From positions 64,492,464-64,556,463 of the forward strand of contig NC_043011.1 of assembly GCF_006345805.1 (NCBI RefSeq): DNA of 64,000 nucleotides. The letters are read 5' to 3'. Positions 12,762 to 39,361 of this stretch are shown here, piece by piece (the first letter of the stretch is position 1; the number at the start of each line of letters is the position of its first letter). The notes below the pieces were generated by a model. That model worked only from the letters and a program-made list of their open reading frames with translations. It searched no databases and was not told the DNA's origin. The DNA is from Octopus sinensis (lineage: Eukaryota). Made by a program: the position numbers and the translations under genes.

Positions 12762-12804
12762 ATGAAATATGTTCTACTACTTCTACTTTTAATTCTCCTG
12801 CAAG
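12762..12804 (+). CDS. Coding exon 1 (signal peptide) of a putative small secreted cysteine-rich protein, copy 1
   Basis: ATG AAA TAT GTT CTA CTA CTT CTA CTT TTA ATT CTC CTG CAA G|GTAAGT = MKYVLLLLLLILLQ+G. Perfect donor, phase 1, 43 nt. Hydrophobic signal-peptide core, conserved in the duplicate at 54528 with one synonymous change. Confidence 0.8.
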
Positions 12805-13344
12805 GTAAGTAAAATCCATATCATTTCACTTGATCTCGCAACGAGTGAGGTATCCATTATCTCTTAATACGTATATATGTATACCCGTCTCTCTACATCC
12901 CTCCCCACCTCTCTCCCTCTCTCTCTCTCCATATATATATATATATGTATCACCGTGATCGTCGTGACTGACCAGGATATCGGATGCTTCTATACATCGC
13001 TTATCACCATGTGCTTGGCATTGTTTTGGCTTTCAATGACGCTATCCCGCTGGATAAGAGAGCAGGCCAACAGAAAAAAGAGCGAGAGAACGTCGTGGCG
13101 AAAGAGTACAGGAGGGATATCCACACCATCCTACCGTAGCTGTCTCCGCACGCAGAAGCATACACATACAAACGCATACACACACATGCATACAAACACA
13201 CACACGCACACACACACACACTCACACACACACACACACTTACACACACATATATATAGATAAATTGATTTAACAAATATAAATATATTTGTGTCTATGA
13301 ATATATATGCATGTATGTATGTATATATATATATATTTTGGCGG

Positions 13345-16300
13345 GGGGGGGCACACACCACATTCCCCAAAACGGAGGTACCCAGATATAATGCGTGCTA
13401 CAAAACACCAGCATATTATTGAAAGGTCAGCTGCTGAACAAGAATCTTTCTTGCGCATGGCATAAAAGATTGAACAGCAGCTAACCTGGCTCAATCAAAC
13501 TCAAACTCGCAGATGGGACTATCCACAATTCACAAGACCGCCACAGCAAAGAGACCCAAGTTGGACACCACGTGCAAAAGCACATACATCACCTCGATGC
13601 TCCTACTGAACATCAGAGGACTGCTAACACACAGTAACAGGACAAAAATCCCGTTCTTGAGACACCTTGTTGCATTCAATCAAGCCTTATGCATAGCACT
13701 TACGGAAACTCACCTGAAACCGGACATAGCCGATGCAGAAATACACATACCACGGTATGTTGTACTACAGACATACAGAAAAGAAAGGAGTCATGGAGGA
13801 GTTGCTATGTACATCCGTGAGGACCTCACACCTTAGGTCCTTTTGTCATACTCAAATTCGGTGTATGACACACTAATTGTACATATAAGGCAAATAGGTG
13901 TAATTATATGTGCTACATGTTGCCACCTAGATGCCCAAAGCCATGTAGGCAAGTTTGAAGACTGCCTTACAAAATAGAAGAAGTAAGAAGTTCTAGTCAC
14001 ATTAGAACAACACATATGTTTACTTCTTATGGGAGACATCAATCTGCCCAATGTCAGATGGCCCGAGAGTCTTTCTCTCACACGATGTGTATGAGGACAG
14101 GCGAGGTCCCTCCTGAACCTCATCAACACTTTCTACATGGAGCAAGTAATACTCCAACAAACCAGGGCAGGTAACATACTGGATCTCTGCTTCACATATA
14201 ATATGGATCTCATCCATAATGTGAAAATGACACCGACACTACTCTCGGATCACAGAATGGTAGAGCTGACCATGTACGGGCCAAAGGAAAGCATGGACAT
14301 GCAGCCTACAAGAAAATCTCAGAATCTTTCCATCTTGAACTTTCATAAGGCAAACTGGAAACAAATTGCGAAAGAGATCCTCAAAACAAACTGGTCTGAA
14401 TGTCTATCCTCGCTGGACATCGACGTGATGTGTGTAATGCAAGCCATATGCTACAAATTTGTCCCAGGGAGAAAGGCCACTGTACACAAGAGAAAAATCC
14501 CCAGAGAAAGGAAAATTCTAATGAGACGGCGTACAAAATTTCAAATCGCCTAAACAAACAAATTGAAAGCAGTGAAAAGTCCCACCTGAATATAAAATTG
14601 TTGGAAACTGAAAAATGTCTGCAACTCTCCCATGCAAAAGAAAGAGCAGACAAAGAAACCTGGGCTTTAGGCAACATAAATTCTAACCTCAGAGCTTTCT
14701 ACAGGTATGCCAAAGAAACAGCTACGGTGCCCTAAAGGATAGGGCCACTCCTTGAAAATGATGGCACGCTCACAGGAAACCCAATGAGGATAAGTGAAAT
14801 ACTAAATGAGCAATTCACAAGTATTTTCACTCCAGCCCTAGGGCATATTCATGTCAGCAATCCAACAGACTTCTTTACCACTGCAGATATAAAATCATGG
14901 GCTGCGATGATTGATTGCATCAATATAAATGAAGACGATGTAATAAAGGCTATAGATTAATTGAAAACAAACTCAACTACTGGCCCCGATGGATTCCCAG
15001 CAATCCTTCTAAAAGTATGTAAGAGAGTCCTAGCAAGACCACTGCAGTTCCTCTTTCAGAGCTTCCTTGCAACTGGCAAACTTCCAAGAAAATTGAAGGT
15101 AAAATATGCCCTATTCATAAAGGAGTTAGCTGAGCGGAGGCCAAGAACTACAGCCCTGTCTCTCTGACATCACACATCAGCAAAATCATGGAACGAATAG
15201 TCAGAAGAAAACTATTCACATTCCCTAAAAAAAATGACTAGCTTCCTGACACCCAACATGGTTTCCGACCAGGAAGAAGCTGCCTAACTCAGTTCCTACA
15301 ACACTATGACTGGGTGCTGAAACGACTGCTCAACAACTTAAATGTGGAAGTGATATATCCCGACTTTGCAAAGGTCTTTTATAATGTCGATCGTGGAATG
15401 ATATGTCACAAACTGCGTGATCTTGGCATCGTAGGAAAATTGGGAGAATGCCTTCATGACTTTCTGAAGGATAGAATCCAGGATATAGTAGCCAATGGGG
15501 TCACTTCCATTAACACGCAAATAATGAGCGGTGGTCCGCATGGCACTGTTTTCGGACCACTGCTTTTCATAATGGCCCTCTCTAACGTGCACTCAGCCAC
15601 GCAGAATACCACGATCACAATTTATGCAGATGATACAAAAGTTTGAAAGGCAATACTGAACCCCGAAGACACTAAGCACCAGCAATGATACCTGGACAAA
15701 ATATACAAAGGGGCTGAAACGAATAGCATGCAGTTCAATGTGAAAAGTTTCAAGCTTTATACTATCAGTATGCAAAACTAAATGCAATACCCAATAAATT
15801 CACTGGATCTGGTGGGATTACAATCCCAGAGGCACAATCAGTGCGAGACCTCGGTAATTACGTGAGCAACCTTTCATGTGCATGTTGCTAATTTGCCAAT
15901 GAAATGTAGGCGGCTGACCGGATGGATTCTTAGAATCTTTAGAACAAGAGTCCAGGAAACCATGATGGTCCTGGGGAGGACACTTGTCCTAAGCCGCTTT
16001 GACTATTGCTCTCAGCTATGGTCACCATCCAGTGTCAAGTAATTCACAGAACTTGAGGCGATACAATGAAGCTACACGAAGAAGATAGCCTCTGTGCAGC
16101 ATATAAGCTACTTGGAAAAACTCAAGAGATTAAGACTCTATTCCTAAAAGCGTAAGCGAGAAAGATATGCCATAATATACATATGGAAGATCCTAGAAGG
16201 ACTTGTCCCAAACATTGGCATCGAGAGTTACACAAATGCTAGAAATGGGTGCCACTGCTTAGTGCCAAGGACTAATTTGCTATCAAGATGTAGGACAAGA

Positions 16301-16600
16301 TAATGTGATAGCCTGGGATTCAAAGGCCCACAGCTCTTCAATATCCTCCCGAAAAACCTGAGAGAACTGCATGGGGTGGATGCAGATGTCTTTAAAATGA
16401 AAGTGGATCTCTTCCTGACAGGTGTCCTAGATGAACCAACTTCACGACAGGAGGTGCTGATGAGGGCAGCTGCATTGAACTCTCGCATGCACCAAATGGC
16501 AATTGATAAAAAGCATTCGTGAAGTAAAATCATGTAGCAACACCAAATGGCGCTGCACCAGCATGGCCACAGCTCCTGAGCTGAAACTAGATGAAGTAAT
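13345..16600 (+). mobile_element. CR1-like LINE (ORF1 tail, APE endonuclease, RT), disrupted, in intron 1 of gene copy 1
   Basis: LLNIRGL, LTETHL, GGVAMYI, MGDINLP, GNILDL (APE); PGPDG-like, YPDFAKVF, GGPHGTVFGPLLF, YADDTKV (RT); 3' YS*KRKRERYAIIYIWKILEGLVPN. Confidence 0.88.
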
Positions 16601-16804
16601 AAATAAAAAGTCAATATATATGTATATTTATATATATATATATATATATATATATATATATATATATATATATATATATATCGTACATATATATGTATAT
16701 ATATATGTGTGTGCATGTGTATAAGGATATATATATATATATATATATATATATATATATATAGTGTGTGTGTATAAGGTTATATATTATATATATATTC
16801 ATAA

Positions 16805-37689: not shown

Positions 37690-38190
37690 AAGACTGTGCG
37701 TTACTTTGATGATGGATTTCACTAAAAGTTCGCCAACGGCAAAGCGGTTTTGGACCTGGCTCAAAAACTTCAAAAGCTAAGATTGTCTGTGCAGGGGAAG
37801 ACGATCAGGACGAGCACTAACATTGGACGAGACAGTCGAGGAGGCTAGCCCGAAACTCTTTGAAAGTTCCAAGATCTCCATGAGAAGAACAAGTTTGGAA
37901 ATCCAGATTCCGCCAATGACTGTTTAGCTCGACCTGATGAAACACTACAAGCTGAGGTTCATTCAGGCCATAATGGCAGACGACAGGCGACTGCGCAAAC
38001 AAGGGGCTATGTGAAGGGCTTGGTCTATGCCAGCCACACCCTTTCTGAAAACCTAGAGGAAGTCGAGCAGAGAATCAATACCGCACTGGAGACTGTGACA
38101 CAAGACATGCTGCCGAGTTTTTGGGAGGAGGTACATTAACGCCATGGCGTGTGCCCGACCATAGGCGTTTCGAATATCAGACATTTGTGA
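37690..38190 (+). mobile_element. Tc1/mariner-superfamily transposase relic, internally deleted
   Basis: SMRRTSLEIQIPPMT, YKLRFIQAI, then LEEVEQRINTALETVTQDML..WEE. N- and C-terminal parts are joined without the DDD core. Confidence 0.5.
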
Positions 38191-38619
38191 TATTCTTCAT
38201 GGAATCCACGTCCATTTGAATTCCTGATGCAATTTTTGCAGGAATACGTCATGCTGACCAAATTTAAACCTGTTTAGTTTCAATTTCTTTTGGCTATGTA
38301 ATTTCTGTGATGTTTATATCTCAAAAGATATCAAAGATCTTGGAAGTAAAGCACTGTATGTATGTATATATATATATATATATATATATATATATATATA
38401 TATATATATATATATATATATATATATATATATATATATATATACGTGTGAGTGATCATTCAAAATTCTTTCATTACTCACTTCCAATTATTGCAGGAAA
38501 CGGGAATTGTACAATTATAATCATACATGTCTCTACATGTCACGTTGTAGAGACCTATGAGCAGTTTTCCACAAATCTACTTTTGCGGCTGTTGAAGTGA
38601 CGAAAAGGTTATAATGACG

Positions 38620-38860
38620 GTAGAACAATCTAGATGATTAACGTTCTTACACCTAAAGAGATATTCACTGAGAAATAGAAGTTTATGGTGAAAATGCTCT
38701 ATCGTAAGACGTAGTGAGGCACTGGCATCACCTTTTCCAGTTTGGTGAGAAATCGGTTGAATCTACAGTGATTCCTGGACAACCATATACAACCACATGT
38801 GACGACACCATTACTAAAATGGAAGATACCATTTCTGAAGTATTGGCGACTTAATTCTCG
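38620..38860 (+). mobile_element. Mariner transposase N-terminal HTH relic
   Basis: VLTPKEIF.. / YGENALS*DVVRHWHHLFQFGEKSVES..PGQP. Confidence 0.55.
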
Positions 38861-39317
38861 GCAATTCCCCCAAGAAGTGTTCATAAATGTAAGAATGTAG
38901 GATCCATGGAAAACTGATCACGGCCATTTGCATTTGCGGAAGGCGCCTACATGATGGATTACCCTGATACTGATATGTGTATATATACATAAAGATATAT
39001 TTACGTACAAACACGCACACACACACACACACACACACTCAAACACACACACATATATATATATTCGCTCCAACATTCGAAACTCGATTACTTTGACCAT
39101 ATAATTTTTTTTATTTTCTCAAAATAAAAACATATATATATATATGTATATACGTATACACACACACACACACATATATATATATATATATATATATATA
39201 TATATATATATATATATATATATATGTGTGTCCTGTGACACACAAATATCTAAAGTATATTTCTCTTTTCCCTTAGTTTTATAATAACTTCATACCATAT
39301 TATTTCTTTTTCTGCAG

Positions 39318-39361
39318 GACCTCACTGGGATGAAAATAACAATCTTCAGAAATACGACTGA
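39318..39361 (+). CDS. Terminal coding exon 4 of the putative secreted Cys-rich protein
   Basis: tatttctttttctgcag|GA CCT CAC TGG...TAC GAC TGA = (G)PHWDENNNLQKYD*. Strong acceptor, phase 1 matches exon 3. Total CDS 43+67+182+44 = 336 nt = 111 aa + stop. Confidence 0.68.

Follow-up and report, generated by a model that had tools for sequence, protein, structure and literature searches.

We examined a stretch of 64,000 nucleotides (nt) of Octopus sinensis DNA (contig NC_043011.1, positions 64,492,464 to 64,556,463 of the forward strand), called the window throughout this text, for a candidate gene of four short exons on the plus strand, which would encode a small, secreted, cysteine-rich protein. 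A preliminary description made from the letters alone had proposed this gene, and its coordinates, GT-AG boundaries, phases, intron lengths, 111-residue product and cysteine spacing were all confirmed on the sequence. The four coding pieces measure 43, 67, 182 and 44 nt, that is 336 nt, and are joined in phases 1, 2 and 1. Once spliced, they are translated as 111 amino acids (aa) in one uninterrupted frame from ATG to stop, without any internal stop codon. These 336 coding bases are spread over 26.6 kilobases (kb); from the ATG to the candidate polyadenylation signal the gene would span about 26.7 kb, for a message of about 0.5 kb.

Exon 1 (12762..12804) begins with an ATG having an A at position -3, codes for MKYVLLLLLLILLQ and the first base of the next codon, and ends in phase 1 at the donor CAAG/GTAAGT; its content is that of the n- and h-regions of a signal peptide. 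Exon 2 (22165..22231) follows the acceptor ...GTTACAG/CG and codes for AITTC, the putative c-region of the same signal peptide, then for RDSMKQYPLSNPDPHYC and two bases of the next codon, ending in phase 2 at the donor GCGA/GTAACT. Going 3' from exon 1 and leaving aside the reading frames of transposable elements, it is the first candidate met for a phase-1 internal exon. Exon 3 (35282..35463), with its 60 full codons, carries five of the six cysteines of the predicted mature protein and ends in phase 1; its acceptor is TTTTCTTTTAG/TCG (also written ...TTCTTTTAG) and its donor is TGTG/GTATGA. The coding part of exon 4 (39318..39361) lies behind the acceptor TTTTTCTGCAG/GAC (written elsewhere TTATTTCTTTTTCTGCAG and ...TTTCTGCAG) and codes for GPHWDENNNLQKYD, after which it stops at TGA. 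The proposed frame closes 5, 1 and 11 nt past donors 1, 2 and 3, respectively, and in exons 2 to 4 every frame except the proposed one is closed. The GC content of exons 2 to 4 is 37-39%, against 20-33% in the flanks of 150 base pairs (bp), that is about 10 points higher, and it decreases from the first to the third codon position (GC1>GC2>GC3). Inside exon 3 there is also an alternative donor, CGT/GTGCGT (1.8 bits), which would limit the exon to 35282-35328 and leave its outgoing phase unchanged; the resulting short isoform would lose most of the cysteine framework.

The three introns (12805..22164, 9360 nt; 22232..35281, 13050 nt; 35464..39317, 3854 nt) are filled with transposable elements, as had been stated: reverse-transcriptase and zf-RVT reading frames were found in them together with dozens of (AT)n, (AAT)n and (AC)n arrays. 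Intron 1 holds microsatellites and fragments of long interspersed nuclear elements (LINEs), with RVT_1 in the frames 17443-17925 and 17995-18546. In intron 2 there are LINE reading frames and (AAT)n arrays, as well as a minus-strand frame of GIY-YIG-like type, while intron 3 holds the tail of a minus-strand LINE frame at 35674-36186 and (AT)n arrays.

A TATA-like element, TTTAAAATTAAAA, can be read from the sequence at 12710..12722, 40-52 nt 5' of the ATG; it is identical in the second unit of the duplication described below and would imply a 5' untranslated region of about 20-30 nt. At the other end, an AATAAA which may serve as polyadenylation signal stands at 39466..39471, 105 nt past the stop codon. 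By our own estimate from the base composition, an AATAAA would be met by chance within 105 nt with a probability of about 0.2. In DNA so rich in A and T, both elements are weak as gene signals.

The predicted product

Read by inspection, the start of the precursor divides into a basic n-region, MK, a hydrophobic h-region of at least 8 residues, YVLLLLLLILL, and a polar c-region, QAITTC, with the small residues T at -3 and C at -1 before RD, as in a classical cleavable signal peptide. The join of exons 1 and 2 completes this signal peptide coherently across the phase-1 intron which splits it. Genes of secreted proteins typically have a phase-1 intron close to the cleavage site of the signal peptide. 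After entry into the endoplasmic reticulum, the precursor would lose its signal peptide by a cut somewhere between residues 17 and 19, the simplest site being TTC/RD (C19/R20). The preliminary description had placed the cleavage there, leaving six cysteines, which is plausible; cleavage after T17 or T18 fits the -3/-1 rule equally well and would leave a seventh cysteine.

The cysteines of the precursor occupy positions 19, 36, 45, 53, 76, 84 and 97. With cleavage at C19/R20, the mature protein would count 92 aa and 10.8 kDa, with an isoelectric point of 8.9, a grand average of hydropathy of -0.93, a net charge of about +5, and six cysteines spaced X8, X7, X22, X7, X12. No N-glycosylation sequon was found in these 92 residues. 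The predicted tryptic peptides of the product include FWNLLR, DPLACYQGEDSQCVSVIR and GFCGPHWDENNNLQK.

We modelled the 60 residues of exon 3 alone with AlphaFold2 in single-sequence mode. The model has four helices, with a predicted local distance difference test score (pLDDT) of 71.7 and a predicted template modelling score (pTM) of 0.45, to be compared with 46.1 and 0.29 for a single control (n=1), a 60-aa chance open reading frame with several cysteines located at 12205-12384 of the same window. The two Cx7C pairs, C45/C53 and C76/C84, fall on predicted helical segments, separated by the loop of 22 residues and flanked by C36 and C97. Together with this model, the near-symmetric spacing of the cysteines points to a hairpin or bundle of antiparallel helices, in which C53-C76, C45-C84 and C36-C97 would form three nested disulfides. 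Stapled in this way, the product would resist proteases and remain stable extracellularly. Its net charge, taken with its high hydrophilicity, argues mildly against a membrane-lytic role. Processing at KR48-49 in the manner of a neuropeptide precursor is unlikely, as this site lies within the first predicted helix, between two cysteines.

The tandem duplication and its repeat setting

The window contains a collinear tandem duplication with a period of about 42 kb, of which unit 1 (602..20954) is matched by unit 2 (41215..63999), both on the plus strand, at offsets of 40.6-43.6 kb; the last block pairs 20497-20954 with 63560-63999 at an offset of 43,063. The identity between the two units is 90% when gaps are included and 92% when they are not. 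In a self-comparison with BLASTN, the block 9824-16802 matches 51593-58556 at 90.6%. Exon 1 belongs to this block, and a second exon 1 is found 41.8 kb downstream (54528..54570, plus strand) with the same ATG, the same frame and the same GTAAGT donor, the only change being a synonymous one, CTA to CTC. A search of the window with tblastn for paralogues returned only the exons themselves; the second exon 1 came to light through self-BLASTN alone. The preliminary claim of a tandemly duplicated gene is thus borne out for exon 1 and the 5' end; the rest of a second gene would fall beyond base 64000.

The divergence between the units is not uniform around exon 1. At 12500..12899 lies an island which takes in exon 1, with the putative promoter before it and the first part of intron 1 behind it. 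Over its 400 bp the units show 10 differences (about 97.5% identity), whereas the 7-kb block typically has some 8-9 in every 100 bp; no other low-divergence stretch of the block is as long. The 200 bp from 12662 to 12861 are 98.5% identical between the units, which places them in the top 1.6% of segments of this length.

Other islands of low divergence exist. Those at 2253-2552, within the C-terminal reading frame of a LINE, and at 7134-7412, within a minus-strand fragment of an RTE-like reverse transcriptase, are each 98.5-100% identical between the units. The stretch 4206-4565 (partner at about 46.75-47.1 kb) is AT-rich, does not look like a transposable element, and is 98-99% identical between the units, well above the average. 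In it, ATGATTCCGTACAAA/GTAAGT combines an ATG with a perfect donor behind it; the stretch may represent a further first exon, a regulatory element or a tract of conversion.

The same insertions of transposable elements are found in both units, which means that these insertions are older than the duplication. Unit 2 holds about 1.8 kb extra, visible where the offset steps from the block that ends at 60097 to the one that starts at 61604. Since the window spans about 1.5 units, the array may continue on both sides; a possible preceding unit would have its end some 1.3 kb ahead of base 1.

As a whole, 79% of the window is self-similar. The exons had been described as lying in non-repetitive islands; this is true of exons 2 to 4, which are single-copy in the window, but not of exon 1, which lies in the large duplication. 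The plus strand is asymmetric over the whole window, with 36.7% of A against 28.7% of T, and its very dense (AAT)n, (AT)n and (AC)n arrays produce long poly-N, poly-I and poly-L open reading frames which are artefacts. Neither tRNA genes nor Rfam families were found in the whole window. The minus-strand frame of intron 2 (25532-25900, 122 aa) has a GIY-YIG-like 'YIGTTT...' motif, which suggests a Penelope-like element; it has no Pfam match at E<=0.01. A LINE reading frame of 405 aa lies at 42752-43966, with copies near 2.1, 27.2-28.9 and 60.7 kb. Its one close relative in the libraries (94%) is encoded on a 1983-bp contig, from an Italian sewage metagenome in ENA labelled MG_IT_BO, whose DNA is 91-96% identical to five copies of the LINE in the window; judging from these identities, the source species or a close relative has left DNA in that sample. 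The named relatives of this LINE frame, from shrimp, corals, a hydrozoan, a starfish and a killifish, all stand at 62% or below, the best one (62%) being in Penaeus. For a second transposable-element query, no named protein was matched in the library.

Chance assembly and alternative gene structures

Weight matrices of generic metazoan type, set against the base composition of the window, were used to score every GT and AG site. Among the 2809 GT sites, donor 1 ranks in the top 0.14% and donor 3 in the top 5%; among the 3601 AG sites, the acceptors of exons 2, 3 and 4 rank in the top 1.5%, 1.0% and 0.06%. ATG starts resembling that of a signal peptide number 16 over both strands and two reversed controls, and only those of exon 1 and of its duplicate are followed by a donor of at least 5 bits; the three control sequences have none. 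When acceptors of at least 4.4 bits are retained in the 30 kb past exon 1 and LINE frames are excluded, the candidate exons form the only phase-compatible chain of at least 100 aa. An exon of the grade of exon 3 is expected 0.31 times per 64-kb strand according to block shuffles, and it occurs 0 times in the reversed controls; in the right phase and interval, the expectation falls to roughly 0.05 by our own conversion. Finally, no chain as good as the candidate at every step was found in 300 block shuffles, the thresholds for each step having been set post hoc, after the candidate had been seen.

Several results weigh against a real gene, and most of them would be expected if four unrelated open stretches had been assembled by chance, as can be done in any 64 kb of DNA rich in A and T and in pyrimidine tracts, in which case no such mRNA would exist. 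Donor 2 (GTAACT) is weak, being only in the top 18%, and an open frame of 75 codons is not unusual in itself. Permissive chains, in which every site is at least as good as the weakest values of the candidate and which have at least 293 coding nt, number 139 in the sequence 3' of exon 1, and there are between 15 and 7048 of them in each of nine 30-kb control segments taken from nonsense sequence or from the opposite strand; 29% of the block shuffles hold at least one. In reversed sequence, the best unconstrained four-exon chains reach 59-63 bits, against 41 for the candidate. This means that GT-AG boundaries with matching phases prove nothing alone, and we rejected any claim of significance based on them. 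Chains as good as the candidate at every step do occur in one of the nine real-sequence controls, and in three of nine when 1 bit of slack is allowed. Moreover, the leucine run of exon 1 is encoded by a stretch rich in CTA and CTT, in a genome full of triplet repeats. As for the comparison between units, the second unit is in view for exon 1 alone. The counterparts of exons 2 to 4 would lie beyond base 64000, with exon 2 predicted near 65.2 kb and exons 3 and 4 about 13-17 kb past it. The three other low-divergence islands lie in transposable elements or in unexplained DNA, and, as near-identical islands occur inside transposable elements, host exons are not the only places where the units diverge little. 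Gene conversion, and not selection, could account for the island which holds exon 1.

The searches for homologs also count on this side. No identical or similar protein was returned for the whole 111-aa sequence by a word-indexed search of 5.8 billion clusters (a collection of 15 billion proteins), and at E<=10 it matched 0 Pfam families and 0 chains among the PDB sequences. An exhaustive phmmer search of the exon 3 peptide against 1.84 billion representatives gave no homolog, and Foldseek, run with the exon 3 model against the PDB, gave no significant match, its top row being the honeybee odorant-binding protein OBP14 (E=5.9, probability 0.11). A scan of the metagenomes of the Joint Genome Institute (JGI) with six back-translated peptides had no match, and the peptide strings of the candidate are absent from the full texts searched. 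The family, which the preliminary description had not recognised, is thus absent from Pfam, from the PDB and from two libraries of several billion proteins. This negative result is a weak one, since the abundant transposable elements of the window are also without named close relatives in these libraries, in which the host is not represented.

Chance assembly nevertheless leaves a good deal unexplained: the fact that a start of signal-peptide type is uniquely paired with a donor close to perfect, the island of low divergence which surrounds exon 1 in the two units, the c-region and cleavage motif which open exon 2, the contrast in GC between exons and flanks, the even and symmetric set of cysteines, the confident helical model compared with that of the chance open reading frame, and the fact that none of the 300 shuffles has a chain as good at every step. 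We consider it unlikely, while taking it seriously. Less likely still is an intermediate situation, in which exon 1 and its promoter are real and what follows differs: there would be other or additional exons, or the short form of exon 3 with its donor after 35328, or else a decayed or non-coding transcript at this place with a functional copy elsewhere in the array. The conservation between units, which is seen for exon 1 only, the weakness of donor 2 and the in-phase donor of 1.8 bits inside exon 3 all agree with such a structure, and tandem arrays often contain pseudogenised members. Nonetheless, there is no other phase-1 internal exon candidate outside transposable elements between exons 1 and 2, a coherent signal peptide results when these two exons are joined, the four segments are intact throughout and free of internal stops, and the short form of exon 3 would delete most of the cysteine framework.

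Hence we favour, with a probability of roughly 0.6, a real unannotated four-exon gene, which would be transcribed and spliced as proposed and would encode a secreted helical protein of about 10.8 kDa with three disulfides. The hidden gene of the preliminary description keeps the support of its first exon and duplicate, of its acceptors, of the lack of a competing chain outside transposable-element frames, of the GC content and of the helical model of exon 3; it becomes a probable gene only. The gene model is to be regarded as a good prediction and not as a proven gene.

Known systems and possible role

The nearest system in working principle may be attractin, a pheromone of Aplysia, which folds as an antiparallel hairpin of two helices with nested disulfides and a near-symmetric spacing of its cysteines. 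Attractin is made with a signal peptide and as a single product with six cysteines forming three intrachain disulfides (PMC3484142). The candidate likewise has a predicted signal peptide and a single six-cysteine product, and the architecture suggested by its spacing and by the helical model of exon 3 is that of the attractin hairpin. It differs by its length (92 aa for the mature protein instead of 58), by its central loop of 22 residues, by being basic where attractin is acidic, and by having no N-glycosylation sequon; presumably it also lacks the conserved helix motif of attractin. Membership in the attractin family was rejected, given the empty Pfam and PDB searches, the lack of a fold match for the exon 3 fragment and the differences in size, loop, charge and motif; the likeness may be one of working principle.

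In the salivary glands of cephalopods, 27 superfamilies of unknown function have been described in a preprint of 2026, mostly short and secreted and many of them without any homolog outside Cephalopoda, and one toxin superfamily, SF1, is expanded in tandem arrays, which are reported for SF1 only (bioRxiv 10.64898/2026.02.02.703354). The candidate is similarly short, predicted to be secreted, an orphan, and placed in a tandem unit (two units about 42 kb apart). Unlike SF1, it lacks a C-terminal peptide of tachykinin-like or neurotensin-like type flanked by cleavage sites, and we rejected an SF1-like identity for this reason.

Other small disulfide-rich families were considered. The six-cysteine odorant-binding proteins of insects are also small, secreted and all-helical with three disulfides, and one of them heads the non-significant Foldseek result. 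Their signature spacing is long, X3, long, X8-14, X8. The candidate is shorter and its spacing is off this signature; we rejected this family on the spacing, on the absence of a PBP_GOBP match in Pfam and on the Foldseek E value. Twin CxnC motifs on two antiparallel helices, closed by two disulfides, characterise the CHCH proteins (Cx9C) and the alpha-hairpinins of plants (Cx3C pairs), of which the two Cx7C pairs of the candidate are reminiscent. Those families are proteins of the mitochondrial intermembrane space, the CHCH proteins having no signal peptide, or peptides of plant seeds. Their spacings are different and there is no sequence relation, which leaves an analogy of architecture only. 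Kunitz and saposin domains are likewise small secreted domains with six cysteines, and Kunitz domains share the X8, X7 and X12 intervals. The full spacings are X8, X15, X7, X12, X3 for Kunitz and X2, about X27, about X10, about X24, X5 for saposin. We rejected both a Kunitz/BPTI and a saposin-like identity for want of a Pfam match and because the intervals differ in order and number; exon 3 is also predicted to be all-helical, unlike Kunitz. Insect chemosensory proteins, crustacean hyperglycaemic hormone and ion transport peptide (CHH/ITP), EGF, Kazal, big defensin, IL-17-like proteins and beta-microseminoprotein were rejected on their known spacing or on the lack of a Pfam match.

If the gene is real, its basic and very hydrophilic mature protein of about 92 aa would fold as a small helical bundle, with the antiparallel hairpin and nested disulfides described above, and would work extracellularly, as a soluble ligand or effector. 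It might be a lineage-restricted gland product, of the type of a pheromone or other chemical signal, of a salivary or venom component, or of a host-defence protein. Tandem amplification and a near-identical signal-peptide exon fit a rapidly evolving gland product of this sort, and the venom, pheromone, antimicrobial or chemosensory profile put forward in the preliminary description is a reasonable guess at its class. More tentatively, and with rather more doubt than conviction, one may imagine an expressed gene founding an undescribed lineage-restricted family of secreted helical hairpins with three nested disulfides, an analogue of the attractin type which arose independently, carried by an array of about 42-kb units in which the signal exon stays near-identical while the mature part diversifies, as in the superfamilies of venoms and pheromones. 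The family is new in sequence; the kind of gene, lineage-restricted, secreted, cysteine-rich and in a tandem array, is a familiar one, and a specialist would find the candidate useful and not surprising.

A real gene at this locus would be an example of a short, intron-rich gene which is invisible to annotation based on open reading frames and on homology, and it would add a candidate for a secreted protein of signalling, salivary or defensive function from an animal lineage which has been little sampled. Pheromones, toxins and antimicrobial leads have repeatedly come from small helical proteins stapled by disulfides, which are stable in sea water and in body fluids. The tandem array would itself offer a natural test, in which the signal-peptide exons and the mature exons are compared between units.

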